Positions 3,164-58,400 are shown, counted from the first letter of the stretch. The stretch is 64,000 bases of DNA from Oculina patagonica (GCF_052425735.1 NC_135765.1:33852001-33916000), one strand, 5' to 3'. Numbers and translations are program-made. Notes: generated from the letters alone by a model not told the origin.

Positions 3164-3215
3164 CCCCAACCCGAAATCGATTAGCCCCCAGTAAAAGCAG
3201 GCTCTGGGTCAGGAA

Positions 3216-5648: not shown

Positions 5649-5968
5649 CCCTTTATTATACGGCCAAATTCAGAAACAAAACCCCGATACAAACGAACTT
5701 TGATATCCAGAAATCTAATTATGGTGGCTGTTCATTTAGCCCCTAAGACGATTAGCTGCAACCCGAAGTCGATGCAGTGACATGTCCCATTCATTTCTTG
5801 TGTGTACATTTCGTGCAATATACATTGTGATTATGTCCCTGCAATGTGTGATTTAAACCTTTATCAGAATCCAAAGTGCAACTGTCTCTCCTATTACATT
5901 ACGACGTTAAAAATAGTCTGAACTGGACTGGAAAATAATTACAACTGACTTTTGAAATTTATTAGCAG

Positions 5969-6860
5969 CTAAACAGGGTGTTTTCCAAACAAATTCAGCA
6001 AAGGAGAAATTAGGAAGGAAAGGTAAGTGGTATTTTATAACAAATATTCAGTCCAGAAATCTACCCCACTAATTATGCAGTAAAAACTCAGTTAAGCCAC
6101 CAAGGGCATGCTTCTTTTGAAGACCTTTTATCAAAAGTATGTTAAATTTATTGATTATTGTACATCATGGATACAAAATCTGTGGTAAATAAAAAAATTA
6201 TAATTATTATGACCTACTGGATTCTTTTGATTTATTAATTATTTCTGTCAGTTTCAGCTCCAGGAAATGTGAATTCAAGACAGTCATCTGAAAAGGTCTC
6301 ACATTCCAAGCAATTCTGATTCCAACAGCCAGGGATACAGTCCTACCCCCCAAGGGGGCTTTCATTTTTTAGTACTAGGTGGGGGAGAGTGGATGTGTTG
6401 GCAAAATCACTTGGAGTGGATTCCAAATATTACTCAACCCCCCTTCCTTGGTAGGCAAAAATGTTACATCAGCCCTGTGGTGTCGAGTTGAAGTTGAAAT
6501 TATGTGCAGATCCAGAAAATATGCATTCCAACTCCTATACATGGAAGGTCATTCAAAATTTTGAGGTGGTGGGGGGTCTCAAAATCCAAAATTTTTAAAG
6601 GAAAGTATGCTTGCAGCTTAACTGGAATTTCCAGAGAGGAGTGGGGATTCAAACCAAATAACCTTCCATGGGAGGGGTATGGATAATTTTTTGAAACAAC
6701 GCAATACAGGGCTATGCAGGCAGAAACTTTATTTTGCAACTCTGTCATCTAGCAGGAACCATGTATTTGATATCACCAAGTGAAATAGAAAGAGGGCCCT
6801 TGGCAGAAAACGTCTTTAAAAAGCCTGCCAATTATATATGTTGCTCTGATTAAGTGAATG
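5969..6860 (+). pseudogene. Diverged remnant or partial paralog of the last two exons of the Pil1/Lsp1-like gene
   Basis: 54-bp exon 5969-6022 (AKQGVFQTNSAKEKLGRK) has intact AG/GT and the same length as exon 56287-56340 (AKQVVFRTNSAKENAGRK). The exon from 6252 (SAPGNVNSRQSSEK vs SAPSNMNSQQSSGK) hits an early stop and is split by a MITE. 6770-6860 matches the final coding part (gagggcccttggcagaaaacgtcttt vs gagggccctcggcagaggatgtcttt). Confidence 0.7.
6500..6704. mobile_element. Small MITE (TGTG..TCCAGAAAATAT... family)
   Basis: Imperfect terminal inverted repeats. Related copies at ~15082-15248 and ~46310-46481. Confidence 0.5.
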
Positions 6861-8519
6861 TAAAAAAGTTAACTTAATGAGAAATTTAACAGTTTTTAGT
6901 AAGGCACCCGAATATCTGTTTTTATTTTCTTACTGGAGACTGTATTATAATTATAAATAAAGATAAATAGCTATGAATGCTTGTAAATAATGTAGTGTTA
7001 TTTTTTTAAAAAAAAATGTGCCTTTGCACAAAAAGTTTCTAAAATAATCGGGATAGATTTTTGGTATATGTTAGTGAGTTGCTATAGCTGATACAAAGTT
7101 AATGTTGTACTAACAGTAACTAATAAATTAAAAAAAAATGATTGTGTTGAAGCTTTCAAACTTTATTCCCTCTTCCCCTCTTCAAACTAATTTGACTGTC
7201 TGATTACCAATACCAATATTTTTAATGCGCTGACTTTGAACGCTTAATATAACTTTTTCAAGATTAAACCAAACACTGCCAAACTTTGCGAGTTTATCTA
7301 AAATTTAACTGGGAATAATTTGGTGGGATAGGTTGTTTTGTCGAAAACTTGAAGTTACCATTGCATGACAACAGCATTTTGACATTTTTATACAACGTTT
7401 TATTGTTTTCAGTGAGTACTTTTCAGTAATTTTGCACCGTTTTCTAACAAAAGATTGCAGATCCAAAATGCCAGCTGTTTTGACAGCATGATGTAATTGT
7501 CCATTGTGTCGTACATCAAAAGATAGATTTTGGACATACTAATTATATCCTCTAAGTTTCATTGTCATTTGTGACTGCTTAAATATTCTGGAGGTTATGG
7601 AGTGGGGGTAGAAATTTCCCCCCTCCCCCCCCCCAGATTTCAGATTTTTAGATTCAGATTCAGATTTTTTATTATTTACAACAATTAAACAATATTACAC
7701 ACTATTTACAGAAAGCCCGATCTGAATAGGGTTAACTCACCCTGCTATTCTAAACTGTGGGGGTTAAGTTGCTACATCCATATTGTACTTGAGATTATGT
7801 ACACTATAGTTTATATAGGAGTAAATAAACTATGTAGAGCCATTTGTTACAGTTGTACTGTATTATTTTGAACTTTGAATTGACAGTAGTATATCTACAG
7901 AGTAGGTCTAAAGATGTGATTTAGGTAACTCAACATTTATGAGGGAATTTTCCTAATGTAATTGTTTGTATTCATAAACATTTTAAAAACTTGTATGACT
8001 TTTGTAAGTTAAAAATGTGTGCATCACAGTAAGAAGGTAAACCGTACTTTAGGGACCCCTCTAAAAACACTGTTGTCACAGACAAAGTAAAATTTTTTTT
8101 TTATAACATGTCTACATTGCAGCACAGGTAATTATCTCATCTGAAATATCTTTTGAAAAATCTTGATCTTTACACCTCTAATGTGGAATTGCGTGCCCAA
8201 AGACACAAAAATTAGCCATTGTTACGGACTGTATCAATTTCTTGACTTGGAAAAATATGCCAACCAAGTTAATTTGAAACCCCCATCATCTTAAACTGTT
8301 TTTCATTTTGATTGAGACTTCAAGATAGCACAGTCAGACTATACATAATGTTTAATGGTCTCACTCACTAAATGAGTACAATCATATATAACGATTGTGC
8401 ACTATTTGTTTTTTACAAATAATTTAATCACTCAGTTTATAGAATGGATTCCAGGTATCATGAAAGCAATTTTAATTTTAATTCTTCTTAATTATTGTTT
8501 TAACAATAATTAAGAAGAA

Positions 8520-11500
8520 TTAAGAATCACTCGAGTCACTTGAATTGCGATCATCTATTTCATCTTCTTCTACTTGAGGCATTCTTTTACTTGATGTTGG
8601 TGGTGTAATTTTATTGTAGTGTTGCCAGGTGCTTTTTTGGAATGCCATGATACAATGAAGATTTCCACCTGTCTTTTTCACATTTTTCTGTTGAATTCCT
8701 TTGTGAAGTTGACGAATGTTAAGGTACAAAGGGGCCTCGTTGTTTAAATCTGTTTCAATGTCTGTCCACCTAAAAGAAAAAAGTTTTACAGTTAACTGCA
8801 GTAGTTGATTACAGTGTACTGTTAAAACCATCAAGCCAAGTGGTCCATAGTCCTCTAAACCTTATCCTGATTTCTGTAACACTATAGTGACCAGGAGTAT
8901 TTCTATTCCCCCTGAATTGGATGCTGGTTCATCACAGGGTTACCCTCCCTGCATTAGTTTGCTGGTACCCATTTATACGCCTGGGTGGAGTGAGGCAATC
9001 TGTGAGAGTCTGAAGTTAAGAACACTAACCACTTGGCCTCTGCATCTCTTGATGGACAAACAAGAGGACAAACTAACAAGGAAAGTAGAAATTGGTACAG
9101 TTTTTTTACCTTTTACAGTGAATGCTTGGGTATTTACAACTTGGGTCTCCAATCAGAATCCAAGTTTCAACCTCATCTTCATATAACTGCACCCTATGAT
9201 AACATGCAAATGGTCAGTTGTGTTACATTATTCAGAAATACCAACGGTAAGAGCCTGCTCTTGAGTAGTTAGTGGCTCGTACAATTTCCATGGCATGAAC
9301 ATCTGAAGTCTATGCTAGTGTACTGCAAGTTTATCCACAAGACAAGTATTTGTAAGGGTCCCAAATGGGGGGGGGGGGGGGGACAGGGGGTCCAGGAGCC
9401 CTAAGCTTTTTGCTGTGCAGAGCCTGGAGCCTTGAGAATGTTAGTTTAAAGACACATTTGTTTGTAGATACGAGTTTTTTGTCTTTCCAGACTGTTAGCC
9501 TGAGTTACTCCATGCTTTATACTGGACAAGTCCAGTAAGAAACAACATCAATGAGCCGTCAGGCATAAACAATTAACCTCTAACATTGAAGAAACCAAGT
9601 TAAACAGTAAGTCAGAAATTATAATTATTGTCTTAACCTGTATGCATCAACAGCCTTGACAGGTGAGTCATCATAACCAATAGGACAAAAGTAGTGATTG
9701 TAGCAGTGGTAGATGAAAGCCATCTGGGGATTATGCAGACCCTTCTTTAACTGACGTAAAGCTTCCTCACCACTCAGGCCAATAGTACGACTCTTTCCTT
9801 TGGGTTTGTACAAAAAGTATGCCTCACCATGAACTCCAAAATACTCACAGAGCTGCCTGAACCATCTAAAATAGAATTTCAATGTTGATTACTGGAAAAA
9901 TTGTTTACCAACCCTCCAAGTTTATTTTTTCCTTAGTGGCCACTGACTGCTCAATTTGGTCACCAATGAAAAATTTTAGTCGCTAAATATAGCTCACACT
10001 TTCAATCCTTCTTCTCAATTTTAGTCGCCAGGCTGGCGACTTCGAGGCAAATTTAGTCGCCAGCTCCAAAATTTTAGTCGCCATAGTGACTAAAAAAATG
10101 GTCTTAACTTGGAGGTGTGTTAACATTACTTACACAACAGATAGTTTTACTGACCTTTTTCTTTTTCTGCTCTTTCTTTTTCTTTATTATTTAGTAGCAT
10201 TAATTATAATTATTAGCTAACATTATGGGAATGTAATGTCTGCAGATTTGGTATTAATAGCAACAAAGCATTTTGCATGCATTGTATGCCTGTGGAAATG
10301 AAAATGATTTTGTCTTACCTCATTAAAGTGGCATTTCCAGTGAATGGTCCAAACCTTATTTCTGCAAATGGCGGTTTAAAACCCAGTATGCTTAATGCTT
10401 CCTCTTGAGTCAGGGGTTGCTTACTATAATACAACAAAAGGACTCTCAGTTTAGTTACTAGTCAGATACTGACAATAATTTTAGTTTTTATGATTAAAAA
10501 AATTGTACAGTCAGTTAGTATGTTAGAACAGGTACCGGTATTCTGTATGATACTGTGGGAAATCATTACTTTAACAATAATTCATGTTATTAATAATTAT
10601 GTTCTTTTGTTTAAAATTATGGCAACATTAAACTATAATAGCACTGTAATGTACAACAGAAACCCATGGCGTAGTAGACAAAGTCTTTGATCAGTCACTG
10701 ACATTTTTTTTTTTTTTTTTTTTGGGGGGGGGGGGGGGTTAAGGGTTGAGAATGACATGACTAATAAAGTCACATGACTTTGTCTGATCAACAGTAAGAT
10801 ATCACAATATTTGGTACATTAGTAACATTAGTCATGTCATTCTAACTAATTTGGAACTACAGTTCTCAAACTCATTAAAAATTCATCCAGTTAAAACAAA
10901 GAAAATCAGAACCGTGATGGAGGTTTGGAAATCTGTTCTCTGAAGAGTTTGTTTCTATTGAGAAGATACATCCAACACTTGAGGAAGTGTTTTTCTTTGT
11001 TCTACTACACTGTACCTGCCTGCACCAAGGGAGCTAAACAGGAAATTCCAGCAGGATACCAGAGAGGAGATTCCACAAGAATGCTTGTATTGAGGCCGGC
11101 TCATACAGTACCTGACATAAAGTATTAACAAGTAATTAATTAATCATAATTTAATATTAATCAAAAGCAAATAACAAACTGTTCAAAGGACGAGTATCTC
11201 GCACTGACAGGTTGTCAAAAAAGATTTTTCTTTGAGGGGGAGGGGGGAGAGGAGGCTCTGAACTTCCTGCTTCCCACTCCTTCCTTAGTGGACCCCCCTT
11301 GTAATGCTATTTCTGTTGCAAAATATTATGCAATGTTGCAATTTTTTCCCAGCTTCTTCCAGTTCATGCTTCCTAGGGAATCCCCCTTCCCCTCCTCTCC
11401 CACCTCCCACAGAGTTCCCATCCCCTTTTATTCCCAGGTTCTATCCCCCTGTCACACCCCACAGTTTTAGCCTAGCTGTGGATTTGAACACAGGGTTGTC

Positions 11501-13255
11501 AAAAAAAGGCGGCAACCGGCACATTTCACCAGCTGTTCTGAATACTGCGCCAGCTACTCCTAATGCTAGTAGGTCAGTTCTGAGCATGATATTGGAGAAA
11601 GCTAACTAGTGTAAAAACCTCAAATCCATTTTGCTCCCGAGGGCTTCGCGCCCTGGACCCACAACAGGGGCGCTGCCCCTGTACCTTGCTGGAGCTCACT
11701 GGGTCCCCAGACCCACTGCATGATGGGGGGCCTCTTGCCCCCGGTGCCATCTACTATCAAAATATCTCCGGCTACTTTAAATCATTTTGACAAGGCTGTG
11801 AACACGACCAAACCAATTATCCAGTCTTTCTCCACTTATCTCTGGTCTCCCCCGTCCCCCTCTGGATGGGATGCCAGTCCATGACAGGTTACCTCTGGTA
11901 ACATTTTGACAGGCTGTCCTGATCATCACTATGCTAACCAGTACATGAATCTGGGTGGAAAGAGACTCCATGAGAGTAAAGTACCCTGTCCAAATACACA
12001 AAACAGTGTGTCTGGCCAGGTTTTGAACCCTGAGACTGACCCTGGCCAGACACACTGAACACACTAATCATAAAGCCACCATGCATCCTATTATTGCAGT
12101 TTTTTAGTGAAATGCGAACTCTGAAATTCAAAAACTATCCAACTAACGATTGCATTTTTCACTGCCTTCAATCATAGTATTATGGCGACAGCCAACAAAC
12201 CATGAAAAACAGAAAGGAACAAAATGGATCGAAATCTACCAATCACAACTGACAGAGGTGACCTTTTGACCCGGCTGAAGTGAAGTTCTGTTTCCTGAGA
12301 GGTCTGCTAAGATGATTGACGGCAGCAAAAAGCATAAACCATTGGTTGAGGATTGAATTTCAGAGTTCGCATACCACTGAAAACCGCAATTAACTACTAT
12401 TTTAAATTAGTGGCAGATCTATCTGATGTTACAAAGTACTATTTACCATCTTCTGAGGTCTAGGACTTTCCTTCCGGCCATCATTTCTTGAGTGACAGTT
12501 TCCATGGATGTCAAAGAACTTCCCTTGTACAGATCTTGCTTATTTGAGGCTGCAGTTCGATGTTTAGTGTCATCGTTATCATCCTGAAAGTCATGCTCTT
12601 TGTCTCTAAGATACTTTTTTGGTGGTTTCTTCCTCTTTTTGGGTTTAAAACAGTCTACATCAACTTGCCATGAACATGAACGAGGAATTTCAGGTTTTGC
12701 CTGATGTGAGAAATTTACTGATTCAAACATTTGTGGATCAGAGATACTTTTAACATGCTTTCCCCGAAACACTTTTTCCTCCGAGATCAGCGGCAGCGAA
12801 AAAGTGCTGCATTCCATAACTTGATCTTCTTCTCTAAGTAATGGGGGAACTTTCCATGAGGAATTTGTCAGCCACTTTTCACTTTTAAAATCTTTCTCTT
12901 TACATTCTTCGGTTGCTATGAAAGATACCCTTGATGTCCCGGCATTAAAATTGTTTATATTGCTGGTTATTTCATGGACAGCAGACTCTGGAATTTTCTG
13001 CTCCGGTTCACAGACTGTTGAGCTTTCTTCATAAGTAGCATTACATGTAATTTCGTACGACTCTTTTACACAGCTGTTTTTAGTGTCAAGGTCTTGAAGA
13101 ACCAAATCACCATTTGATGGCACGTTGTCCACAGCTTCAAAGAAAATCTCCTCACAGTCAGAGTCGCTATCGTCTTGAGTTAGTTCCCCTTTTTCTTCAT
13201 TCAACTGTGAGCTGTTGTGAATTTTTCCTCGCTCGGTGCTCCAAATCAACCCCAT
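8520..13255 (-). CDS. BIVM: Basic immunoglobulin-like variable motif-containing protein, copy A (6 exons, 523 aa)
   Basis: Exons 13255-12447, 11111-11016, 10423-10319, 9865-9638, 9193-9110, 8769-8520; all GT-AG and in phase. Motifs [25 protein letters not shown], TQEEALxILGFxPPF, GPFTGNxTLMRWF, HYFCPIG, WILIG and GGNLHCI match vertebrate BIVM. Confidence 0.93.
8830..9045 (-). mobile_element. tRNA-derived SINE (abundant family), intronic
   Basis: Family core gggtggagagaggcactgtgagagtaaagtgtcttgcccaagaacacaac, degenerate in this copy. Related copies at ~11860-12050, 23570-23770, 28785-28985, 49550-49810, 53235-53437, 57115-57440 and 59440-59700. Confidence 0.6.
9909..10117. mobile_element. MITE in BIVM intron 3, shared by both arms (also ~51680-51856)
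   Basis: Inverted ends caaccctccaagtt / aacttggaggtg. Internal ttagtcgcca repeats. Present at the matching position in both copies. Confidence 0.55.
11489..11800. mobile_element. MITE in BIVM-A intron 1, absent from BIVM-B
   Basis: cacagggttgtcaaaa ... ttttgacaaggctgtg. Empty site at ~49850-49870 (gatttgaaca on the minus strand). Confidence 0.7.
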
Positions 13256-13803
13256 TTTTGAGATCTTCCTCGAACGTCGTTCAACTTTCGGACCTTTCGA
13301 GTTCCACAGCTCTACATTTCATGTACTAGATGAGATGGGAAGCCATTACGATTTTGCAACTGAATAAAACTCGCATCAACTCAGCAAGAACTAACCTGCT
13401 AAAAACAGCAGGAGGCATGACAAGAATAAATTTTGGAAGTCGTTGCCAACTTTTTGGTGTTTTGAAATTTTCCTTGGTTTGGAAAGTAGCGCTAAAACGT
13501 GTTACCGCTGACCGATTGATGTGTTCTTGCTGAGGATTATGGGAAATTACAGGAACGCCTGGAACATAACTGTTCTGTTTATGCAAATTCGTTGTATTGT
13601 TTTGAGTTTTGATTAGATTTACGCACAACTTCCTTTTGAGCGATTATTCGCAGCTAGTTCACTGTCAAAGGTTCCGCTGTGATCGATCTCCAGGGCGCCA
13701 AAGGAAACCTTTCGAGAAAACATCTGCGTTTGCATAACTTGTTTCACTCTCTGTAGAAACAACTCTTCGAAAACCGAGAAAACTCTTTGAAAACCCGCTG
13801 AAA
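13256..13803. promoter_or_regulatory. Putative bidirectional promoter between BIVM and MORN4 (also 47778-48362)
   Basis: Divergent start codons lie 548 bp apart. The interval is CpG-richer than the flanks and conserved between arms. Confidence 0.55.
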
Positions 13804-14265
13804 ATGTCTTCCCCGAGCTCTCAAGCTGTTGCAAGACACAAATTTACTTACCCCATCGGCGACGTGTACGATGGAGAATGGAATAATGATGGAAGGAAAC
13901 AAGGGATCGGACATCTATCGCTTGTCGATGGAACGAAGTATGTTGGACAATTTCAGAACGGATTTTGCCACGGCCATGGTGTTGCAAGATTTCCGGACGG
14001 CTCTATGTATGAGGGTGAATTTGAAAACGGAAAATACAGTGGCTTCGGGGCTTTTACACGGAGCGATGGAATGCGCTTTGAAGGAAGGTTTCAAAATGGG
14101 AGAGTTGATGGCGAAGGCATGATTACCTTCCCTGATGGAACTCACGGTCGGCCAAGGCAAGAGGGCTATTTTATGGGGACAGAACTTGTCGAGAGATTCC
14201 GAGCAAACGACACAGTTATGAAAGCGCAACAGGCTGCTAAGATTGCTCGAAGTATCAAGATTTAA
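13804..14265 (+). CDS. MORN4: MORN repeat-containing protein 4, copy A (single exon, 153 aa)
   Basis: Four MORN repeats (YxGxWxxGxxxGxG) plus the MORN4-type FPDGTHGRPRQEGYF segment and C-terminal helix. Confidence 0.92.
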   Translation: MSSPSSQAVARHKFTYPIGDVYDGEWNNDGRKQGIGHLSLVDGTKYVGQFQNGFCHGHGVARFPDGSMYEGEFENGKYSGFGAFTRSDGMRFEGRFQNGRVDGEGMITFPDGTHGRPRQEGYFMGTELVERFRANDTVMKAQQAAKIARSIKI

Positions 14266-15853
14266 CAATGAATTATATCACAAATTTTAAGTTATGCAAC
14301 TTAGTTTTAGTAATTTCAAATTCCCACGAAACTGATCTCAATTAAGTATTGTGTAGTGGGAAAGTGGTTATAAATTTCCCCATATCGCTATTGCCGCAAT
14401 TACGGCGAATTATGATTTTCCCTATTCTGTTTTAGAAAATATTATGTACAGATATTGTAAGGGAAACTAAAACTGTTTAATAGTCTAGTTTGTTTCTTTT
14501 TGTTCTCAATGAAGGATCTAGAAATATATTATTATACCCACCCCCAAATTCAATGTTATGCAAATTAGTTTAACACCCACATGAAGCTGAAATTAGAGGT
14601 GAGCTGATTGATGCAAGATCTTCCTGTTAGTAATACGTGCTGACGCCATTGGTGGCAGCATGGGCAATGCTAATTCTTTGTTGTTGTTTTTTTCTTGTCC
14701 ATTTTTAAAAAGCACCATAACTTTTAACGATTGAAATAGCTGTGGTCATGTGGCAGGGCAGAGGCCTACAGAAAGACCACAGAACTGGTACTGAATGGCA
14801 TTTTATAGTACTACAAAGATGCCTCCACTTTGCAGGCTGATTTTCCCCTGCCCTCCCATCCCCATTTTCTTGAGATTGGATCCAGAAAATTTCATAGCTA
14901 TACACAACTTCGAGACCTTGGGAACAAGGTTGAGCTATACAGACACCAGAGAAGTGTCTCTGATGTGTTATTGCACAGTTTTAAAGTTTCACGCACAAGT
15001 AACAGCGACTCAGAGACAGCAGATTATCTCTGTGGGGCTATATCTGTAAAAAAGTTTTGGGTCAAATCTCAGATATCTTTTGTGTGGTTCCAAAAAACAT
15101 TGATATTTACCTCTCAGAAGGAAATTTCAAGGTGGTGTGGTGTGGCAAAGTGTGTAGCTAAACTGAAATTTGTGGAGGGGTAAGGGTAGGAGCTCAAACC
15201 AAAAAATCTTACATGGGGGAGGTATGGACATTTTGGAAAACAACGCATTAGACACTTCTTTGCTCAGACAAGCTACCAGTATATGCAGCACATGGGGTAC
15301 ATTTTCAACCTTTCATTAGTCACTGGCCTTTTTTCATTAGTGTCCCCCACTTGTGCTCTGGTTGATTGCTGTAGAGAACTCAGTATGTGAAATTTTTCTT
15401 TATAAGCTTATTAAATCCCTGCTCCAGGTGTTCTGTTAATTACTGGAGAGTAGTGATTAGTGGGAAGAACAACTTAATTATTTTCACACGCCATTCTTAG
15501 CACTGCTCACTTAATAACCAAATGCCTGTAAAAGGCTAGTAATAAGGTAAAGTGTGTCTCATGAACAATTTAGTGACAAGTCAAAGTCAGAACATTCTTT
15601 ATTAATTTATTAAAATTCTCATAGTTTGGAAAATTATTACAATAATAGTAATTTCTCCTCCAAGAATGACTAAATACTGTAGCTCTTTTGAGAGTTGAAT
15701 AGACCCTCAGAGTTGTTTTTATTTAAATTTTACTGTCAGCTAATTGCTTAATTCAATTTACAATATTTAGCAATGAATATTGGACTGAAACTTTTGAAGT
15801 ATTCAGGAATACATGACTTGACTATTTGACCTAATATGTTTATTATGACATTG

Positions 15854-18800
15854 TTATAAACCATAGGTGACGATCATATCCTTTATAGGCCCTCTGCAGT
15901 AGGAACACTTCACCAAGAAGGACGTACACTGATAACAAGTTATTTGATGGCGACAAGGAATTACAACACAATTTGGTTTTTCAATAGTACAAATTATGCA
16001 ATTATCCTTTCGAAACCACATTTCTTCAATCTCTTTAGTGGCTGATTTTAGAACATCAGCAACAGAGTTCTCTGCAGAGTCCTCTCTCTCCTTTGATGCC
16101 AAAACAATCTGAGTCAGCTTCTCAAACTTGCCAGCAAGCCGCTTCCGAAGAATTTCACTTCTGTCGTTTAAAAGGCCAACTTGACGAGAATGAGCTTTTT
16201 GTTTGTTCTTATGGTCCTCTACTACTGCAGCTAGCCTTTCCTGGTGGAAGATCTTGTCTCTTTTGAGATCAGTGATTGTGCTTGAAAGGTTAGCCATTTC
16301 ACTTTCAAACCTTTTCTTCCATGCTGCGCTGACTTCTTGCTCAATGTTAACAATCTTGACTTCTTGACTACCCAAGTCCTTTTCCAGTGAAGAAATCTTG
16401 GACTGAAGTTTCAAGAGCTCTTGTGCATGGCTTCTGTCTTTTTCAAGGAGTTTTTCACTCAGAAGATCTTTCTCTCTCTGAAAAAGTAGAAGTGGATACT
16501 GTTTGTTCTGAAATTGCTTCAGTTTAACATTTAATTCCAGTGGCAGATCTAGGGGAGGGGCCGGGGGGCAGCCCCCTTTTTCTTGAACAAATAGAGGCCA
16601 GAAGTGTCAAGAAAAGGTTTTTCGAGAGCGGGCCTCCCCCTTATCTAAAGGTCTGGTTCGCCACTGAATTCTATATACTGAAAGCTGGCTTATTTTGCAA
16701 TTGTTTACATCACATACTTGTTTTTTTGACTGAAGGCTTCAATTATTACCAGTCATTCATCAAAGTGAAACATAACTAATGTATTAACTAACTGCATTTT
16801 TACTAGCTAGGAGAATCATTAATTAAATACCATAAACAGGGCCATAGGCAGGATTTTGCATGGGTGGGTGTGAGTGCTGGAGGAGTAAGGATTTAGGGAG
16901 ATCTGGGGATATTCTTCCCTGGAAAATGTTGACAAATAACATTGTTGGTCCACATTTCCTGCATAATTCTGAGAGTCATTTTAACCCTCTTTCCCCACAA
17001 TAAGTTATTCTTAGAATACGTTTTTTCAGGGTTTTTTTTTTATCACTTTCCATGACACTTACTTGTAACATCTCCTCTCTCTGCTTGAGCACTGATGGAT
17101 TCAGGAGCATGTATGATGATTGCAGTTCCCCATGCAAGTCTTTGCAAAATGGCTGGTTCATCCGGCAAACCTGCATTGATAAAGATGCCACTAACTTGAC
17201 AATGCTGTCACTGTGGCCGCCAAGTGAGCTTGTTCCAACTGTAGAAAAGAAAAAAAAAAGCATTTTAAAATAACAGGAAGCTGAAATAACTTTGAACTTG
17301 TGGTAAAAATTATAAAAGGGTAAGGGGTTAGAGCTCGGGGCGGAGCCTCCCCGTACAAAACTTTTTTGAGTACCCCCCCGGGTAAAAATTATGTCTACAT
17401 TTACTTGAGAATGGTAATGGTGGGGTTGGAATGATTATTGTAAAAAAGAGTCCAAAACACCTATCAATTATATAACAAATGTCTCAATTTTAATTGGTTT
17501 TGCAAGTACATGTCTATTTGTCAAGCAGGGCCATAGGCATGGCAGGCATCATGGGTGCATCTGCACCCACACGGCCCACAAAGGTCTGCCTTATCATGCA
17601 GTGAGGGTTAAAATGATTCTCAGAATGCTGGAAATGTACATGATTTGATTATAAGCAAATGAAAAAAGTGCATCAACTAACCTTGTACTAACTGCTCAGA
17701 TTGAAGGTTCAGTATCATTGACACAATAAAAGCCTCTCTGCAGAAACACTTGGTGCTATTCTTTTGTTCACAACAGTGATCTGCTTTTCCACTCAACAAA
17801 GCTCGTGGAATCTCGTAATGACCAAACTCTTTTCGAAGAACAACCTGTCCTGCAGATTCAGAAATATCCATGGATACCATACTAAACTCTGGATAGCACA
17901 GCTGGACAAGCTTTTCGACATGCTGAAGAATATTAATTTCTCCTCGAGTCAAGTCTGCAAATGGAACTGTTACTGATTGTTTTGTCGTTGCTCTGGAGAG
18001 AATTGTATCCAAGGGATCAACCAATCCAGACCTGTACAACACGTCGATTAAAGATTGATTACACAAAACTAACTTCTGATCAATTTCCTGTTTGATTTTA
18101 CTTAGCTTCTCTGCCGAAATGCAGTTTGGTATTGGGTATGTCATCGATCCATGAACAGTGAAGAAATGTTGAGCAACAAGCTTAAGCAGTGCAGACTTAT
18201 CACTGATGTAAAAGTTGGCATGTCGCACATCTGAGGTGCAGTTTTCTTCCAAGAGTCTGTAATAGTGTGGAATCAGATCTGGTCTCTGCTCGATGGCGTG
18301 AACCCACATGCTACTGATCTGATGGTCAACGTCACTAAGATGAACGACAGCTCTTCGATCCCTGTCAATCTTGAGATAAACAAAGTCAACCCCAGAGGCT
18401 AGACCATCCTTGGACAAGTCTGACACCCAAACACCTTTGACAAAAAGTTGACCTTTATAACGTTCACCTAACAGCAACGTGCCCACCTGTGACTTGACAT
18501 AGTCAGAAGGCGGACAAAGAAAAAGAAACCGCCTCAGGTACATTTCCCAATCTTTATGATAAAGTGGAAAGACAGATACACGTGTGTCTGTCTGTCCAAG
18601 GTTGGCAACATCGTCATCATCATCATCATCATCATTTTCCTTCCACCTGTCATCGACAAACACAGTCAACACCTCCTCATCAAATGCCTCATCATGTGAC
18701 AATCCAAACCTCCAGCGATCTTTGCTCGTTTCCATGGAAACCACTCTACCTTCCCTGACTAAAGCTAGGGCGCCAACTTTAAGTCCTTCGCCAAACTGTC

Positions 18801-47315: not shown

Positions 47316-47777
47316 TTAAATCTTGATGCTTCGAGCAATCTTAGCAGCCTGTTGCGCTTTCATAACTGTGTCGTTTGCTCGGAATCTCTCGACAAGTTCT
47401 GTCCCCATAAAATAGCCCTCTTGCCTTGGCCGACCATGAGTTCCATCAGGGAAGGTAATCATGCCTTCGCCATCAACTCTTCCGTTTTGAAACCTTCCTT
47501 CAAAGCGCATTCCATCGCTCCGTGTAAAAGCCCCGAAGCCACTGTATTTTCCGTTTTCAAATTCACCCTCATACATAGAGCCGTCCGGAAATCTTGCAAC
47601 ACCATGGCCGTGGCAAAATCCGTTCTGAAATTGTCCAACATACTTCGTTCCATCGACAAGCGATAGATGTCCGATCCCTTGCTTCCTTCCATCATTATTC
47701 CATTCTCCATCGTACACGTCGCCGATGGGGTAAGTGAATTTGTGTCTTGCAACAGCTTGAGAGCTCGGGGAAGACAT
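47316..47777 (-). CDS. MORN4: MORN repeat-containing protein 4, copy B
   Basis: Protein identical to copy A; about 6 synonymous differences by hand count. ATG at 47777-47775. Confidence 0.92.
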   Translation of the reverse strand: MSSPSSQAVARHKFTYPIGDVYDGEWNNDGRKQGIGHLSLVDGTKYVGQFQNGFCHGHGVARFPDGSMYEGEFENGKYSGFGAFTRSDGMRFEGRFQNGRVDGEGMITFPDGTHGRPRQEGYFMGTELVERFRANDTVMKAQQAAKIARSIKI

Positions 47778-48362
47778 TTTCAGCGGGTTTTCAAAGAGTT
47801 TTCTCGGTTTTCGAAGAGTTGTTTCCACAGAGAGTGAAACAAGTTATGCAAACGCAGATGTTTTTCTCAAAAGGTTTCCTTTGGCGCCCTGGAGATCGAT
47901 CACAGCGGAAGCTTTGACAGTGAACTAGCTGCGAATAATCGCTCCCAAGGAAGTTGTACGTAAATCTAATCAAAACTCAAAACAATACAACGAATTTGCA
48001 TCTTCGCATCTCATAAAACAGAACAGTTATGTTCCAGGCGTTCCTGTAATTTCCCATAACTCTCAGCAAGAGCTCTTGAATCGGTCAGCGGTAACACGTT
48101 TTAGCGCTACTTTCCAAACGAAAAACCAAAGAAATTTCAAGATCTTTCAAAACAACAAAAAAAGTTGGCAACGACTTCCAAAATTTATACTTGTCATGCC
48201 TCCTGCTGGTTTTAGCAGGTTAGTTCTAGCTGAGTTGACAGGAGTTTTATTCAGTTGCAAAATAATAATAGTATTTCCCATCTCATCTAGTACATGGAAA
48301 TGTAGAGCTGTGGAAATCGAAAGGTCCGAAAGTTGAACGACGTTCGAGGAAGATCTCAAAAA

Positions 48363-51201
48363 ATGGGGTTGATTTGGAGCACCGAGCGAGGAAATATTCA
48401 CAACAGCTCACAGTTGAATGAAGAAAGAGGGGAGCTAACTCAAGACGATAGCGACTCTGACTGTGAGGAGATTTTCTTTGAAACTGTGGACAACGTGTCA
48501 TCAAATGGTGATTTGGTTCTTCAAGATTTTGACACTAAAAACAGCTGTGTAAAAGAGTCGTACGAAATTACATGTAATGCTACTTATGAAGAAAGCTCAA
48601 CAGTCTGTGAACCGGAGCAGAAAATTCCAGAGTCTGCTGTCCATGAAATAACCAGCAATATAAACAATTTTAATGCCGGGACATCAAGGGTATCTTTCAT
48701 AGCAACCGAAGAATGTAAAGAGAAAGATTTTAAAAGTGAAAAGTGGCTGACAAATTCCTCATGGAAAGTTCCCCCATTACTTAGAGAAGAAGATAAAGTT
48801 ATGGAATGCAGCACTTTTTCGCTGCCGCTGATCTCAGAGGAAAAAGTGTTTCGGGGAAAGCATGTTAAAAGTATCTCTGATCCACAAATGTTTGAATCAG
48901 TAAATTTCTCACGTCAGGCAAAACCTGAAATTCCTCGTTCATGTTCATGGCAAGTTGATGTAGACTGTTTTAAACCTAAAAAGAGGAAGAAACCACCAAA
49001 AAAGTATCTTAAAGACAAAGAGCATGACTTTCAGGATGATAACGATGACACTAAACATCGAACTGCAGCCTCAAATAAGCGAGATCTGCACATGGGAAGT
49101 TCTTTGGCTTCCATGGAAACTGTCACTCAGGAAATGATGGCCGGAAGGAAAGTCCTAGACCTCAGAAGATGGTAAATTAAGTACTTTGTAAACATCAGAT
49201 AGATCTGCTACTAATTTAAAATAGTGGCTTATTGCAGTTTTCAGTGATATGCAAACTCTGAAATTCAATCCTCAATAACGGTTTACGCTTTTTGCTGCCG
49301 TCAATCATCTTAGCTGACCTCTCAGGAAACAGAAGTTCACCTCAACTGGGTCAAAAGGTCACGTCTGTCAGTTGTGATTGGTAGATTCCTTTCTTTTTTG
49401 TTTTTTCCTGTTTTTCATGGTTCGTTGGCTGTCGCCATAATTATGATTGCGGGCAGTGAAAAATGCAATCATCAGTTGGATTTTGAATTTCAGAGTTCGC
49501 ATTTCACTGAAAACCGCAATAATGGGATGCATGGTGGCGTTATGGTTAGTGTGCTCTGTGTGTCTGGCCAGGATTTGAACCCAGACTGCTTGCTTGATCC
49601 AGAACCCAGGATTCTGGATCAAGCAGTCTGGATTCAAATCCTGACCAGGCACACTGTTTTGTGTATTTGGACAGGGTACTTTATTCTCACAGAGACTCTC
49701 TCCATCCAGAATAATTGCTGGTCAGCATAGTGATCAGGATACTAGCCTGACAAAATGTTGCCAGAGGCGACCTGTCATGGACTGGCATCCCATCCAGGGG
49801 AGGCTGGGGGAGAGGTAGAATAGAGACAAGTGGACAAATTGGATTAATGCTCATGTTCAAATCCACAACTAGGCAAAAACTGTGGGGTAAGGACAGGAAG
49901 GCAGGAACCTGGGAGTAAAGGAGGTGGGAAATCTTTAGGAGGGGAAGTGGGATTCCCAAGGCGGTGGGAACTGGGACAAGTTGGGAAGAATTTTGCAAAA
50001 GAAATAACACAAAGAGGCAGGAGCCACTAAGAAAAGGGGCGGGAACCAGGAGTAAAAGGCATGGGAGTGGGAAGTTCAGAACCTCCTGTCCTCCCTCCCC
50101 CCGCCCCTTCCCATAGAATGCTTGGCAAAGTCATTTCTATTCTTAAGCTTTTTTTTAACAGCCTATAATAAAGTGGCTTGATCAAGAGGCCAATGTGTAG
50201 ATGTTAGTACTTCTGCATCAGTTTGTTAATTGCTTTTGATAAATATTAAATTCTAGTAAACCAAGCTTATAACTACTTGAAAATACTTTGTCAGGTACTG
50301 TATGAGCCGACCTCAATACAAGCGTTCTTGTGGTATTTCCTCTCTGGTATCCTGTTGGAATTTCCTGTTTAGCTCACTTGGTGCAGGCAGGTACAGTGTA
50401 GTACAACACAGAAAAACACTTCCTCAAGTGTTGGATATATCTTTTCAATAGAAACTAACTCTTCAGAGATCAGATTTCCAAACCTCCATCACGGTTCTGA
50501 TTTTCTTTGTTTTAACTGGATGAATTTTTAATGAGTTTGAGATTCAACTTGCGTTCCAAGTTAGTTTCTTGATCAATAAATATTGTGGTACCTTATATTA
50601 CTGTTGATCAGACATGTAACATTAGTCATCATGTCATTCTCCACCCTTAAACCCCCCCCCCCCCAAAAAAAAAAAAAAAAAAAGAAGTCAGTTACTGAAC
50701 GAAGACTTTGTCTACTACGTCATGGTTTTCTGTCGTACATTACTGTGTTATTATAGTTTTAATGTTGCCATAGTTTTATACAAAAGAACGTAATAAAATA
50801 AATTATTGGTAGAATAAATTTAAATTATTATTAATGATTCCCCACAGTATCACACAAAATACCTGTACAATTTTTTCAATCATAAAAACTAAATTTGTAC
50901 CTAAAAATAAGTCAGTCCTTTTGTTTTATAGTAGGCAACCCCTGACTCAAGAGGAAGCATTAAGCATACTGGGTTTTAAACCGCCATTTGCAGAAATAAG
51001 GTTTGGACCATTCACTGGAAATGCCACTTTAATGAGGTAAGACAAAATCATTTTTATTTCCACAGGCATGCAATGCATGCAAAATGCTTTGTTGCTATTA
51101 ATACCAAATCTGATGTAATGTATATGAAATGATTCATATATGAACTGCGGATGTATATGAAAGTGATAAATGATCATCGCAGTGAAGCCTGAAAAAATTC
51201 A

Positions 51202-51235
<34 letters not shown>

Positions 51236-53991
51236 GATACCGGTGCGATGCTCTTCCAACTGAGCTATTGAAGCCACACATTGGGAGCGAGGTCAATTGT
51301 GAGTTCATATTTTCCCGTGAGAGAAGTGAAATGTTGTAATGTATATGAAATGATTCGTATATGAACTGCGGATGTATATGAAAGTGATAAATGATCATCG
51401 CAGTGAATTTCCAATTTAAGCAATTGGAAATAAAGAAGCCTGAAAAAAAATTCAGCGCTTCAACGGGATTCGAACCGGTGACCTCTGCGATACCGGTGCG
51501 ATGCTCTACCAACTGAGCTATTGAAGCCACACATTGGGAGCGAGGTCAATTGTGAGTTCATATTCTCCCATGAGAGGAGTGAAATGATGTAATGTATATG
51601 AAATGATTCATATATGAACTGCAGAAAAGAAAAAGGTCAGAAAAAGAAAAAGGTCAGAAAAACTATCTGTTGTGTAAGTAAAAATTTTGGAGCTGGTGAC
51701 TAAATTTGCTCGGAAGTCGCCAGCCTAGCGACTAAAATTGAGAAGAAGGATTGAAAGTGTGAGCTTAACTTGGCGACTAAAATTTTTCACTGGCGACCAA
51801 ACTTAGCAGTCGGTGGCCAAATGGCCACTAAGGAAAAAGTAAACTTGGAGGGTTGGTAAACAATTTTTCCAGTAATCAACATTAAGATTCTATTTTAGAT
51901 GGTTCAGGCAGCTCTGTGAGTATTTTGGAGTTCATGGCGAGGCATACTTTTTGTATAAACCCAAAGGAAAGAGTCGTACCATTGGCCTGAGTGGGGAGGA
52001 AGCTTTACGTCAGTTGAAGAAGGGTCTGCATAATCCTCAGATGGCTTTCATCTACCACTGCTACAATCACTACTTTTGTCCTATTGGTTACGACGACTCA
52101 CCTGTTAAGGCTGTTGATGCATACAGGTAGACAATAATTGTTCTGACTAATTGTTTAACCTAGTTTATTATATGTTAAAGGTTTTAAGTCTGTCACAAAT
52201 TTAAGGCTGATGGCTCATCAAATTGGCTCTATAGAGCAATTTTCAGGAGTGTTGAAAGTAATTCGCATTTAATAGTTTTGCATTGCTACATGTAGTGATT
52301 TTTTTTAAAAAACTTGCGCCACTTTCTCAACCAATCAAATGTTTTAACTTAAACCAAATTGTGACTCCCTCACACGTTTTTCTGTGCTTTGTGCTGGCTA
52401 CATGCACTATTGCTTTGAGTTTTCATTGGTTCACTGGATTATCTGTGCCCTTTGTAATTGGCCAGAGTAATTACTTTGGTTTTGGTTTTGCACTCTGGAA
52501 AACAGGCTGAAAAAAAAATTAAAACTGACTTGCAAAGATTACCCATTTATAAACAACTTTCCACTGAATAGCATCTTTGTTTGCAAACTGCTACCATGGC
52601 AACATTACAAAATACTGGGGTGTGGAGGAGGAGAAGGGTGGAACCTGCAGTACTTCTAGTGATGCCTCACTTGGTCCTTCTGTGTCAAAACACAAATTCT
52701 CATTGCTTATTTCCATGCATTTGTTCTATAGGATTACTTGGAGAATTTGTTAAACAATCAAAATACTTTTCCTTTAGTGATCATTCTGTCAATTCTCATA
52801 ACCTGAACTCTTTTTTATGTACTGATATTGTGAGGAGAAATTTGATGTTGGCACTCTTGGGGCTTAAAGTTCTGAGAAATATACATGCACAGTTGGCACA
52901 ACCTGTGACTTCAAACAAATCAGGGCCCCAAAGGAAAATGCTCCAGGCCAAAAATAAACCAGGCTTCAGGGCTCTGGACCACTTAAAAATGGGGCTCTAC
53001 ACTGTGGCAAACAGGCAAACATTTACTCTACCTTTATGTTCTGAATAATGTCACACACAGATGTTTGCTTTTTGTTGATAGGGTACAGCTATATGAAGAT
53101 GAGGTTGAAACTTGGATTTTAATTGGAGACCCAAGTTGTAAACATCCAAGCATTCACTGTAAAAGGTAAAAACCTATAGCAATTTCTACTTACCTTGTTA
53201 GTTTGACCTCTAGTTCATCCATCAAGAGACGCAGAGGCCTACTGGTTAGTGCTCTTAACTCCAGACTCTCACAGACTGCCTCACTTCACCCAGGTGTAAT
53301 GAATAAATGGGTGCCAGCGAACTAATGCTTGGAGGGTAATCCTGCGATGGACCACCATCCCATTTAGGGGGGGTACAATGTTGGGTATATGTTACAGATA
53401 CCAGGACTAGCGTTGGTGGTATGGGCCACTTGGCCTTGTGGTTTTAAGGAGCCGGTTATTATTTAGAGAGGGGGGAGGGCTGGTGCAAATCAAGGAAGGC
53501 TATGTTCAAATTCACCAGACCCTCCCCTTTTATGCAGCACATGTTTTGCTGACCCTCTCCCTCTTACCCACTCACCCCCTTGAACCTCCCAAATGTACAT
53601 GCACATATGACCCCCCCCCCCCTCCTTTTTTTTCCCTGCATAAAATCATTGACTCTCGCTGGGCTCCCCTATTTGCACCAGTCCTCCCCACCTTCTAGGT
53701 TTACTGCAATCAAACATTACCATCAATCTATTTTCTTTCAGATGGACAGACATTGAAACAGATTTAAACAACGAGGCCCCTTTGTACCTAAACATTCGTC
53801 AACTTCACATGGGAATTCAGCAGAAAAATGTTAAAAAGACTGGTGGAAATCTGCACTGTATCATGGCATTTCAAAAAAGCACCTGGCAGCGCTACAATAA
53901 AATTACACCAGCAGCATTGAGTAAAAGAATGCCGCAAGTAGAGGAAGATGAAATAGATGATCGTAATTCAAGTGACTCTAGTGATTCATGA
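48363..53991 (+). CDS. BIVM: BIVM copy B (6 exons, 523 aa)
   Basis: Exons 48363-49171, 50295-50390, 50932-51036, 51899-52126, 53082-53165, 53742-53991. Exon lengths are identical to copy A. Confidence 0.93.
51113..51623 (-). repeat. Tandem ~220-250-bp units, each containing a tRNA-like sequence (51203-51275, 51456-51528)
   Basis: Minus strand reads GGCTTCAATAGCTCAGTTGG(T/A)AGAGC...GGTTCGAATCCCGTTGAAGC(C), with A and B boxes. Two full units plus a partial third. Absent from BIVM-A intron 3. Confidence 0.8.
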
Positions 53992-55401
53992 TTTATTTTT
54001 AACTTAATGTCCTCCCTCATTTCAGGGGTCATTCTACAAACTGAATGATTGAATTGAAAACACAAAGTGTTTCATTATAATACATGACTGTAGTCTTTGA
54101 GTGAGTAAGATCTTAAATACCTATATTCCGACCCTGTGCACTATCTTGAACTTTCTGGGAACCACAAATTGTTCGAGATAACAGGGAGTTTAAGATAACA
54201 GGGTTATTTTTTACAGTTGGTGACAAAAAAAATTAATACCACCAAGGGGAATGAAGTTTTTTTGTTCAAGGTAACAGGGATTTCAAGGTAAGTGAGTATC
54301 AGATAGTGGGGTTATTTTTACAGTAAATGACTAAAAAAACAAACAAACAAAAAATCAATTCCAAGGGAAATGACCTTTCATTTGAGATATTGGGGAGTAG
54401 CCCTTTACACCAAACCAGCTTTTATACATGTATAAAGTCTAGTTGAATGTACAATGTCCACCCTGATTTTGTTTTGTTTTGGGTATTGTTAAGGTTTGCA
54501 TTACATTTATTTTGATATTGCTGATCAAATGAACTCGACTGTACAAAGTTAAAACAAAGAGAATAAAGTTTGACAGCTTCCACACAAAAATGTGTTTTAA
54601 AATTTATTAGTTACTGTACAATATAGAGTTTGTATCAGCTATAAATTTTGTAATAATTAATAATTGTTTAATAATTCAATTTTAATTCATATTCCCACAT
54701 GTTTGTTTCCTGGGTGCTAGAGTCTTTTCCCGTCCATTTTCTGGTTATGAGCAGTGACTTTAGTCAAGTCCACTCTTTTACAGTTGATTCTACCTCATGC
54801 ATAAGGGGTTGGTATTTATTATTTATGATCTTATTAAAATATCATTTATACATGGATCTGTTCATAATTCAAAATATTATAATTTGCAAGTCACTTAATA
54901 TAAAAAATCTAGCCACATCATTTTAGAAACATTTTGTGCAACATTAATTTCAAATTTGATAAAAATATTATGTACAAGCTACCCAGCATACAAGAACCCA
55001 TTCTCACACATGCCATGGGCAGTCCCCTTAACAGCGAATATTTGAGTCGTAATGTATTGTGTGTTAAAGAACTGTAAGAGGCAAAAAATTACGAAGACTA
55101 AACAACAATATTATAAAGTATAGTTTGAAATTTAGATACTCCTAATTCTACATTCATATATTTCCATTACAAAATGAATTTGAATTTCCCTTTCATTTAT
55201 TTTTTTGGTATTCGCCACTGGCAACCTTTCTTAAGGAAATAGATTTCTTCTTTAGTACATAATATACAGCAGCTACAGTATAGCCTAATCTCTATGTAGA
55301 AAAATACAATCTCACAATTAATAGAAAAATATTTTCAACTTCCTTACTACAGTAAAAACTTCTCTATTTACCGGTATATATTAACCTTTATTTTAATACA
55401 T

Positions 55402-58400
55402 TCAATTAATGAGATCAACATAACTTGCAGGCTCATTCTCTTCTGTAAAGACATCCTCTGCCGAGGGCCCTCTCTCTAGTTGGTGATAGTAGTTCTTGCT
55501 TGATGACCGAGTCACACTGTTGTCCCGTCTTCCGACCTCATTAATTGCTCCATCACTCAAAACTTTACAAAGCATCTTGTTCCTTCTTTCAAAGAATGAG
55601 CCATCAGTGATAGGCTCTGTATATCCCTCGCTGTCAGAATCTGAGGAATCACTTGATATGTTTGTCCTTGCATACCAGATCTTTCCAGACGACTGCTGTG
55701 AATTCATGTTTGATGGAGCTGAAACTAACACAAGTTAGATCAAAAGAACTCGATAAGTAATTTGTAGATCTATTACCATAAAGTCCATAAACACTCTACT
55801 AAGTCTCCTCTTCCTGGGGGTATTCATTTTCAGACCTTATAGGGGAAGGGGGGTCTTTTTGAAAGTTGGGAAATTTGAATTAAACCCCTGAAGGCAGACC
55901 AATCTGGGTGCTTATTAAGAGCAGTCTCAGTGTGTGTACCTAAGTCTGGTATTCTAGAACCTTCCTTGTGTCACCTTGTCCTAGTTAACATGCAAAAACT
56001 GGCAACTAATTTGTCAAACAATCTGTGAAGTGCAATTTAGCTTTCCATATTTTTTTTATGGGTGGAAAGAAGCACTATCAAATCAAGTGTCTTTCCCAAG
56101 TTACAATGACCCTAGCTTGCAGACTGGATTGAAACCTGTTGAACCAGAACACTAACCATTCAGCCACCATGGCTCACAAAATATGTACGAGAAAAATTAA
56201 GAAATGTTTTAATGACCTTCAGGAAATACTGTCTATCATCCCAATAAATTTTTGGTCTGACAATTTTCTACTGACTGTTGACTTACTTTTCCTCCCTGCA
56301 TTCTCCTTTGCTGAATTTGTTCGGAAAACAACCTGTTTTGCTGCAAATCAATTTAAAAAATATTCAATAGTCAGCTAATGTACCACTATTTTTCAGTCTT
56401 ATTATCATCTACAGTCACTGTGGTTGCAAATGGGATCCTGGTAGTTGTCTATAGGCTTAAATGTGACACTAAGGTACTGTAGAATTATTTTTGTTCCTTC
56501 TAAGTTGTAGTACTATGAGGGAGAATTTGTTCAGCTAGCAAAGCCATTTACAATTATCATTTTCAAAATTCTTGTGACTGGTCTGAGCAATGACACAATA
56601 CTGTATTGAGAAATTTTATTCTGATCATTCTAGGGGTGTCCAGCTCCTGTACACAGGCTAACCAACCCTACAAATGTACACAGCTTACCATGTTTTGGTA
56701 GAGGTGGTGGCGGTGAAGTGGGAGGCGGCCTCAGATCATTCAACGACAATGGCCTCCTAAGATTTGGGTCCACAAGTACATTCCCGTTAGCTTTCAGATG
56801 TTGATGTGGCAAGGGCTGAGGAGCTCGCATAGCTTTGGGATTTCTTGCATTTCCTTTGGATGACTTGTGTTCTGGTGAAGGCGTTAGATCAGCGTAATGG
56901 TATTTAGCACTGTCTTGCTTGACTGGTGCAGATACTGCGTACAAGTAAGGTTGGGGGGACTGTGCCAGTGCCGCTAACTGGGCAGATATCTCAGGATCAA
57001 TGTGAATATCTCTTGCAAGATCATTTACAATGCTTCTTGTTTGACCAGCACCTGAAAGTATAAAATATTAAGTAAATTATATGGAACTTATCAAACTTAG
57101 GTAAACAAAAGTAGAGTCTGCATTCAAGCCTAGTGGTCTATCAGGCTGGAGCTTATCCTTGTTTCAGTAGCACAAAGTGACTATAAGAATTTTAACTCCC
57201 CCCTGGATGGGATGTTAGCCCATTGGCCATGGGATGTTAGCCCAGTGGGTTCTCATCCCCACTCCCACAGCATTAAATTTACCAGTACCCATTTAAACCC
57301 CTGGGTGGAGAGAGGCACTGTGAGAGTAAAGTGTCTTGCCCAAGAACACAACACAATGACGACCCGTCAACCCATGTGTTGTTCGGCAAGACACTTAACT
57401 CTGCTTCACAGAGCCTCTCTTCACTGTGAGGGGCACAAGACCACTATTAATATAACTTATGCCATTTTTTATTAAATGAGACAACTTTTTAGCCAGGTTA
57501 ATTTCACTTGTCCAGAACATACCATGAAAAACCTTGCTTTCTGTGAGTTGAGTTGGTGTGTCTGTAACAAGATCGGCCAGTTTTTTGTATGCTCCAGCAA
57601 CCAGTAAAGTTTTGGAAGCCCACTGCTGAAGACCGTCAGAAATTCTGCCTAAGGAATCCCTCAGTTTACGTGCCTGTAAAAAAATGCTTTGTAATTCAAC
57701 GAGCATATAGCCACGTACATGTACTTATGCCTTACTTAATGTCAAATGTATGATGGTGATGATGATGATAAATATTTCCCTTAAGCTAGCTATAGGGAAG
57801 GCTGCATTTTAAAAGGTGTACCTGACTGTAGTTTCAACTAGGGAGCAAGAATATCATTACCTTAAAAATCTCATGCTTGGTTGTTTTCACCTCTAGCTCA
57901 GCCTGCTCCTGTTCAGCCTGGGAAATAACCTGTAGTATAGTATTAGAAAAAGGCAAAACACAAATTAGGTTAATTGTGGGCATGGCGGCCCAAGCTTAAT
58001 AGATCCCTAAAAGATACTATAGTGACTTTTTGCTGACTGTATCAATATAGACTGCTAGTTGACACAGTATGGCGGCGGCATTTTATTTCTTTATGTACCA
58101 CTCTAAGCAGTCTGTCCTAAACACAAGAGGACAAGAGGAGCAATCCTGTCCCTTTCATGTGGGACCCCCCCCCCCCTGGAAAGCTGGTGGATGATTCAAG
58201 GGATGTTGAACAGTTTTGCTGGCTATTAATAATAAGATTTATTAACCAGTACTGTAATTAATACATTACCTCAACCATTTCATTTGACATTGTCCTAGGT
58301 CTTCCTCCATCACAGTGACTTTTTCTCTTGTTCTGATCTAACTAAAGATGAAACAGTATAATTGGCAGCAATGAGAAACTGAAAACACAAAAATTATTAA

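Follow-up and report, generated by a model that had tools for sequence, protein, structure and literature searches.

Two diverged versions of a four-gene block in the coral Oculina patagonica: a possible old partial duplication with patchy exchange

The stretch of DNA analysed here, hereafter the window, comprises 64,000 nucleotides of the stony coral Oculina patagonica (GCF_052425735.1, NC_135765.1:33852001-33916000; C8, that is chromosome 8, positions 33852001-33916000 of a 529-Mb assembly). Positions are counted from its first letter, and negative coordinates lie to the left of its start. As assembled, the window contains two arms, A and B, that share a block of four genes, namely a BIVM-like gene, MORN4, a two-exon gene ending in a RING finger (the RING gene) and PLCXD, together with the tail of a BAR gene. 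A blastn self-alignment of the window joins arm A (5950-27471) to arm B (56359-38993) in a single inverted chain of collinear matches, and the overall identity of the arms is 72-96%. The arms and their genes are as follows.

5950-27471, minus strand: arm A, with BAR fragment, BIVM-like gene, MORN4, RING gene and the 3' half of PLCXD; collinear blastn chain
5950-7171, plus strand: decayed fragment of the last exons of the BAR gene, collinear with arm B and frameshifted
8523-13255, minus strand: BIVM-like gene of arm A, all six exons open
13804-14265, plus strand: MORN4 of arm A; Pfam MORN match at 13738-14262
15857-19266, minus strand: RING gene of arm A (two exons, C-terminal RING), intact; Pfam RING finger at 15857-16606
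27065-27471, minus strand: 3' half of PLCXD in arm A, 135 open codons
38993-56359, plus strand: arm B, with PLCXD, RING gene, MORN4, BIVM-like gene and BAR 3' exons; blastn chain, gene order identical in an outgroup coral
38418-39402, plus strand: PLCXD of arm B, single exon; Pfam PI-PLC-X at 38355-39008
40737-45695, plus strand: RING gene of arm B, intact, one of just two copies in the assembly
47316-47777, minus strand: MORN4 of arm B; Pfam MORN match at 47319-47843, protein the same as that of arm A
48363-53988, plus strand: BIVM-like gene of arm B, all six exons open

The MORN4 copies differ at 6 of 462 nucleotides, all six changes being synonymous and derived on arm A, and the copies of the RING gene differ by a 12-nt in-frame indel. 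Differences between the BIVM-like exons amount to 18/810 (exon 1), 9/129 (exon 2), 1/133 (exon 3), 11/261 (exon 4), 11/105 (exon 5) and 24/264 (exon 6). An earlier reading of the sequence, the first-pass annotation, had counted the differences by hand; its MORN4 figure (about 6/462, with identical proteins) is reproduced exactly and its BIVM exon counts lie close to ours. It had also described arm A as carrying broken genes, which is true of BAR and PLCXD only, the BIVM-like gene, MORN4 and the RING gene being intact in both arms. Pfam placed MORN, RING finger, PI-PLC-X and C-type lectin domains where that annotation had put them, and a PAN domain as well. The labels “BIVM” and “ATPase” are unconfirmed: a HMMER search with the BIVM-like gene returned only unnamed proteins of exon-1 length, Atlas and Pfam gave no match to it, exact-protein look-ups of the exon-1 products of both arms found no match outside this genome, and Pfam returned for the RING gene just a faint HATPase_c_3 match (E 0.2). 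MORN4 and the big exon of the RING gene are each present twice in the assembly; the BAR exon next to the shared block (56633-57067) and the 5' half of PLCXD are each present once.

The arrangement of the arms was examined with a gap map drawn over the 344 kb surrounding the window, from which the following features were obtained, together with Pfam and self-alignment results for the region between the arms.

1-28077: window part of an orphan contig, contig X (gap map)
28078-28577: scaffolding gap of 500 N; the flanking letters are discontinuous
29960-36691, plus strand: two units of PAN plus C-type lectin, the “spacer” (Pfam, self-alignment)
35841-35976: gap of 136 N within lectin unit 2

Contig X, which carries arm A, extends from -12583 to 28077 (40,661 bp) and is the sole small contig in the 344 kb examined, the contigs adjoining it being at least 169 kb and at least 75 kb long. 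The first-pass annotation had noted that arm A stops at the 500-N gap at 28078-28577, which is correct; a second gap of the same length (-13083 to -12584) brackets the other end of the contig. On the left flank of 28078-28577 stands the final base of a miniature inverted-repeat transposable element (MITE), and the PLCXD exon that this element interrupts is not resumed beyond the gap. The blocks on either side of the 136-N gap are homologous to lectin unit 1 and follow the same order. Because the contig of arm A is bounded by gaps at both ends, the mirrored layout is unestablished: the place and orientation of arm A come from scaffolding alone, and the inverted orientation and the 10-kb “spacer” are putative.

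In the spacer, Pfam identifies a C-type lectin at 32537-32989 and PAN at 30085-30777. At -36500 to -13100 lies an array of at least four PAN plus C-type-lectin units, which belong to the same family as those of the spacer and share their orientation. The large left contig ends within this array and the large right contig opens with two more units, and when contig X is taken out, the array continues in phase from one large contig to the other. Taken together (-36500 to -13100 and 29960-36691), this is a tandem array of at least six units, with 78-98% mutual identity, that breaks the assembly.

These observations bear on two explanations of the locus. One is the gene-converted palindrome proposed in the first-pass annotation, taken here to have inverted arms around a lectin spacer and conversion strongest near the centre; this would be a special case of a duplication, in which the scaffold orientation is right. 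The collinear inverted homology on which that proposal was built is confirmed, and so is its uneven divergence, but the mirroring around a spacer is a matter of scaffolding: no sequence connects the spacer with arm A, its two lectin units run in direct orientation rather than mirrored, the Hi-C orientation of a 40-kb contig is weak evidence, and arm identity is far below that of known converted palindromes. We regard the palindrome as drawn as unlikely. The other is a heterotype false duplication, in which contig X would represent the arm B locus in a second and highly divergent haplotype, left unpurged. The lone 40.7-kb contig, gapped on both sides between much larger neighbours, and the lectin array that runs in phase without it both favour this explanation, which we consider possible but on balance rather improbable. 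Under it, the Hi-C scaffolder would have put contig X into the nearest contig break, in the lectin array 10 kb off.

To obtain a reference for gene order and divergence, we used an outgroup coral (ENA ERZ25878340), in which the order BAR tail, BIVM-like gene, MORN4, RING gene and PLCXD is found on two contigs with 35x and 41x coverage. These contigs are 98.3% identical over 19.5 kb, with 0.85% mismatches, and are probably the two haplotypes of that animal, which makes them a yardstick for ordinary allelic divergence. Divergence between arm A and arm B was calculated as Kimura two-parameter distance (K2P, abbreviated K) for non-coding sequence and as synonymous divergence (dS) for coding sequence.

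5950-8522: non-coding K2P 0.28
BIVM-like introns: non-coding K2P 0.167
13256-13803: non-coding K2P 0.049
14266-14698: non-coding K2P 0.076
14699-15153: non-coding K2P 0.023
15154-15856: non-coding K2P 0.105
16491-17679: non-coding K2P 0.110
26125-27058: non-coding K2P 0.043
RING exon: dS 0.019
BIVM-like exon 1: dS 0.038
MORN4: dS 0.063
RING gene big exon: dS 0.072
PLCXD 3' half: dS 0.194

From the outer to the inner end, non-coding divergence thus passes through 0.28, 0.17, 0.05-0.11 and 0.04. The non-coding columns are over-dispersed, with an index of dispersion of 5.6 overall and of 3.0 in the inner part (permutation p<0.0005), so that the unevenness is more than exon constraint. Either arm differs from the outgroup by a dS of 0.62-0.83. 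Non-coding K2P ranges from 0.02 to 0.28 and dS between 0.019 and 0.194, a spread that a single age cannot explain, as the first-pass annotation had maintained. Low-divergence tracts are distributed in patches between the arms, although recombination among alleles would yield the same. For a retained haplotype, the patchy divergence and the mosaic sequences described below would be ordinary recombination among old alleles, which we hold to be somewhat doubtful here. Against a retained haplotype speaks the K of 0.17-0.28 that extends across 6.5 kb: it exceeds the divergence between the outgroup haplotypes 10 to 30 times and long predates the separation from the sister species. A palindrome would find some support in the climb of identity towards the inner end, which may reach about 100% beyond the MITE, where sequence appears collapsed.

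The same gradient could be produced by a degenerating, rarely recombining haplotype (sex-linked or part of a supergene) near the end of chromosome 8, with arm A allelic to arm B, an alternative that the first-pass annotation had also raised; we think this very unlikely. Stepwise suppression of recombination would then have created strata from 4% to 28%, accompanied by transposon gain and by the loss of BAR and PLCXD on one haplotype. In its favour, divergence climbs monotonically (0.04, 0.05-0.11, 0.17, 0.28), the scaffold ends some 0.45 Mb from the locus, and arm A has the bigger transposon load, two of five genes broken and a mild excess of derived changes (54 against 37 on arm B, outgroup-polarised over five coding regions). 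At PLCXD sites, a second outgroup, represented by the nearest retrievable contigs at about 10% divergence, assigns 18 derived changes to arm A and 11 to arm B. Oculina patagonica is reported to have separate sexes. Against such a haplotype stand the recombinants that exist between the two versions, and three intact genes with low dN/dS (the ratio of non-synonymous to synonymous divergence) argue against strong degeneration.

At the outer end, the BAR fragment has 64-81% DNA identity and 48-55% protein identity to arm B and is split by a SINE-like (short interspersed element) insert at 6502-6710. The identity of 64-81% found in this zone, which includes the 3' untranslated region of the BIVM-like gene, agrees with the 70-75% estimated in the first pass. 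Left of 5950, no match to the continuation of arm B was found. The boundary of homology lies inside contigs on both sides, and this outer edge is a true end of homology. Beyond it, contig X consists of 18.5 kb of transposon debris, with a MITE, a LINE (long interspersed element) endonuclease, an open frame with a DUF7869 domain and one long terminal repeat (LTR)-type element.

9-5445: LTR-type element; direct repeats at -114 to 662 and 4680-5445, 93-95% identical

The DUF7869 open frame encodes 291 amino acids and is located at -3110 to -2238, inside this cluster. Within 48 kb past arm B, no counterpart of the 18.5-kb cluster was found, an absence that counts against contig X being a haplotype of the arm B locus; collinear homology covers 21.5 of the 40.7 kb of contig X and falls short of whole-contig allelic homology. 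The BAR tail is also long dead, which again speaks against a second haplotype. With its frameshift, SINE-like insert and K of 0.28, the fragment looks like a gene cut at the edge of a duplication that then decayed, and its state places the outer part at several times the age of the inner part. The contrast between a K of 0.28 in BAR and of 0.04-0.11 in the inner region would be the pattern expected of a gene cut by a duplication edge.

The inner end is of a different nature. In arm A a MITE has inserted into the PLCXD exon, and contig X stops at the final base of this element.

27472-28077: complete hAT-type MITE of 606 bp, terminal inverted repeat CAGGACGTAACAAGTCGAT, in the arm A PLCXD exon

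Full-length copies of this MITE, 97-100% identical, occur on C6, C1, C5, C2 and C7, each with target duplications of 7-8 bp, and the arm A copy is 100% identical to one on C6. Its target, AAGAAATG, corresponds to 38993-39000 of arm B, inside the PLCXD coding sequence. The family thus has at least eight copies of 97-100% identity across chromosomes, this one in a coding exon, and such uniformity suggests that its mobilisation may be recent or ongoing. Next to the insertion, the PLCXD 3' half of arm A differs from arm B by a dN of 0.009 and a dS of 0.194. A dN/dS of 0.05 at a dS of 0.19 indicates that the PLCXD of arm A was complete and functional until recently, when the MITE arrived. Its 5' half must exist or have existed, and a second PLCXD 5' half was not found in the assembly. 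Arm A, then, does not end at PLCXD but at a young MITE and a contig break, and the “broken PLCXD” is the outcome of these two and not of a duplication edge.

PLCXD of the outgroup coral is one open frame of 321 amino acids, relative to which arm B has one extra base at 38991 that shifts the frame by +1. This is its sole indel and lies 2 bp from the junction. The annotated arm B product is accordingly truncated (197 amino acids), and exact-protein look-up found this product in no other run and no match to it outside this genome. The extra base is probably a consensus error, caused by arm A reads collapsing onto arm B. A footprint of hAT excision was ruled out as its source, the MITE being far younger than the divergence of the arms. 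These observations would suit a retained haplotype as well: contig X ends exactly at the last base specific to arm A and the PLCXD 5' half has no second copy, as would be seen if the haplotypes became one at this point, and an indel so placed is what a polishing error from collapsed reads would produce.

Further evidence was obtained from other samples. We found 24 public runs, all as Logan contigs, in which word depth carries no single-copy calibrator; a calibration on neighbouring transposon bins across runs was dropped, its ratios being in conflict (1.1x to 10x). Four runs were aligned to positions 13300-19299 of arm A with a likeness threshold of 85%: X1 (probably the source sample), X2 (a coral metagenome) and organisms C and D (D being X18), which represent sister species. 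Both versions are present in X1, with word depths of about 28 for the arm A type and about 17 for the arm B type at six places and of about 45 for shared words, and in X2, at about 1:1. Two diverged versions of the four-gene block exist in the DNA of this coral, and both O. patagonica samples examined carry them, which, like the ratio of 1.65:1 in place of 1:1 in X1, counts against a haplotype pair. Organisms C and D show one version each, although contigs can drop variants.

The sister-species version resembles now one arm and now the other. In the MORN4 3' flank it is B-like, with arm B letters at 20 of 21 diagnostic sites, and around MORN4 arm B lies about 0.5% from the sister species and 6.7% from arm A. 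In the 3' half of the big exon it is A-like, with 17-20 differences from arm A over 1211 bp compared to about 65 between the arms; over the big exon, arm A and the sister species are 1.4% apart, compared to about 5% for the two arms. In the RING exon the sister-species version differs by 4% from either arm, and the arms by 1.6% from each other. Both organisms lack 528 bp common to the arms (14630-15157, 2.3% apart), in place of which these two sister species have 58 letters. In two regions each arm is thus nearer to the sister species than to the other arm, and the arms, at 72-96% identity, do not reach an identity far above that expected for their age; concerted evolution is absent here. The switch in resemblance, from arm B at MORN4 to arm A in the big exon, could nonetheless be the product of a crossover between inverted arms, as a palindrome would allow.

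A look-up with MORN4 returned two short contigs, L003 and L004 (SRR28110921), both mosaics of arm A and arm B letters. Such contigs may be mixed graph paths and are real only where switches are less than 31 bp apart (14414/14420, 14097/14100); the L004 mosaic is compatible with its run holding both versions. Intermediate and mosaic haplotypes in other samples, and a single version in the sister species, are also what a pair of old haplotypes would give. In organism D, arm A 18704-19242 additionally matches a 2,082-bp contig that is 84-87% like the 5' part of the big exon and has four times the local depth; no third copy of this kind is present in this assembly.

Several further features lie within the arms. 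A stretch of 6.7 kb is confined to arm A.

19377-26124: arm-A-only stretch (blastn), including a 1.3-kb element at 20017-21347

The 1.3-kb element contains internal tandem repeats and is found upstream of the RING gene in arm A (20017-21347) and in an intron of that gene in arm B (42819-44094), with 82-87% identity; the two copies probably go back to separate insertions by members of a single transposon family. The RING-gene intron contains a short repeat of very high copy number (17311-17379), for which each of the four runs gives a word depth of about 1e5.

Taking these data together, we tentatively favour, at somewhat less than even odds, the reading that contig X is an old partial segmental duplication near its source that has been patchily homogenised, with its orientation unproven. 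Both versions would then belong to one haploid genome, and exchange between them would cause the patchiness. The outer edge of the duplication would have cut the BAR gene, whose leftover fragment would have decayed freely to a K of about 0.28. The inner 15 kb would have been re-homogenised in patches, by gene conversion or, if the copies are inverted, by crossover, leaving a silent divergence of 0.02 to 0.19 and the complete genes open. The duplicate would continue beyond the young MITE, where the assembler probably halted at a stretch nearly identical to arm B and collapsed it. Homogenisation of different patches in different directions in each lineage would produce the mosaic pattern of the sister species. 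A duplication would account in this way for the dead fragment, the patchiness, the sister-species pattern and the presence of both versions in both O. patagonica samples. A third paralogue as conversion donor was ruled out, the big exon of the RING gene having only two copies in the assembly.

A number of observations weigh against a duplication. Retained haplotigs typically betray themselves as an orphan contig between two scaffolding gaps beside its look-alike (PMC9516828), all four complete genes are intact in both copies, a point also in favour of the haplotype reading, and two regions are without concerted evolution. Sister species X18 shows only one version, with uniform word depth, the assembly lacks the PLCXD 5' half of arm A, and the depth ratio of 1.65:1 in X1 fits no simple model. 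Both the presence of two copies per haploid genome and the collapse of the inner continuation are assumptions of this reading. In our assessment, a duplication is the leading candidate, with an inverted layout making up perhaps half of its weight; an ordinary haplotig is the less probable second, some other explanation is quite unlikely, and a rarely recombining haplotype is the least likely.

Outside sex chromosomes, a coral palindrome that carries genes and shows a gradient of conversion would have been unusual, and the basis for it is removed here. One unusual reading remains beside two ordinary ones, a nearby old duplicate and a retained haplotype. The assembly may overstate the number of genes for MORN4, the BIVM-like gene and the RING gene, and the annotated 197-amino-acid PLCXD probably owes its truncation to a frameshift next to a collapsed junction. 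If both copies are real, the locus documents in compact form how duplicates have exchanged sequence patch by patch in closely related coral species.

Four known systems invite comparison. Segmental duplications with interlocus gene conversion share with this locus a partial gene at the edge, patchy silent divergence and intact internal genes; here, unlike there, the inner edge is hidden by the MITE and the contig break, and two copies per haploid genome are presumed. The gene-converted palindromes of primate sex chromosomes resemble the locus as scaffolded in having inverted arms with whole genes, a spacer and signs of exchange between the arms. Their arms, in the work of Rozen and colleagues and of Skaletsky and colleagues from 2003, are said to be more than 99.9% identical and to evolve in concert, whereas the arms described here are 72-96% identical and in places nearer to the sister species, with the inverted layout unproven. 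Hyper-divergent regions are known from C. elegans, and strata from sex chromosomes; such haplotypes resemble this locus in their 5-28% divergence, their gradient and an immune-type neighbourhood (here the lectin array and the RING gene), with allelism being putative in our case. For heterotype false duplications in scaffolded assemblies, criteria are available (Ko et al. 2022, PMC9516828; purge_dups, PMC7203741), and the locus shows look-alike blocks on one scaffold with an assembly gap between them, and a small contig beside its counterpart in a region more divergent than the genome average. It departs from them in that nearly half of contig X is unmatched and in that the outer 6.5 kb, with a long-dead gene fragment, are 17-28% diverged.

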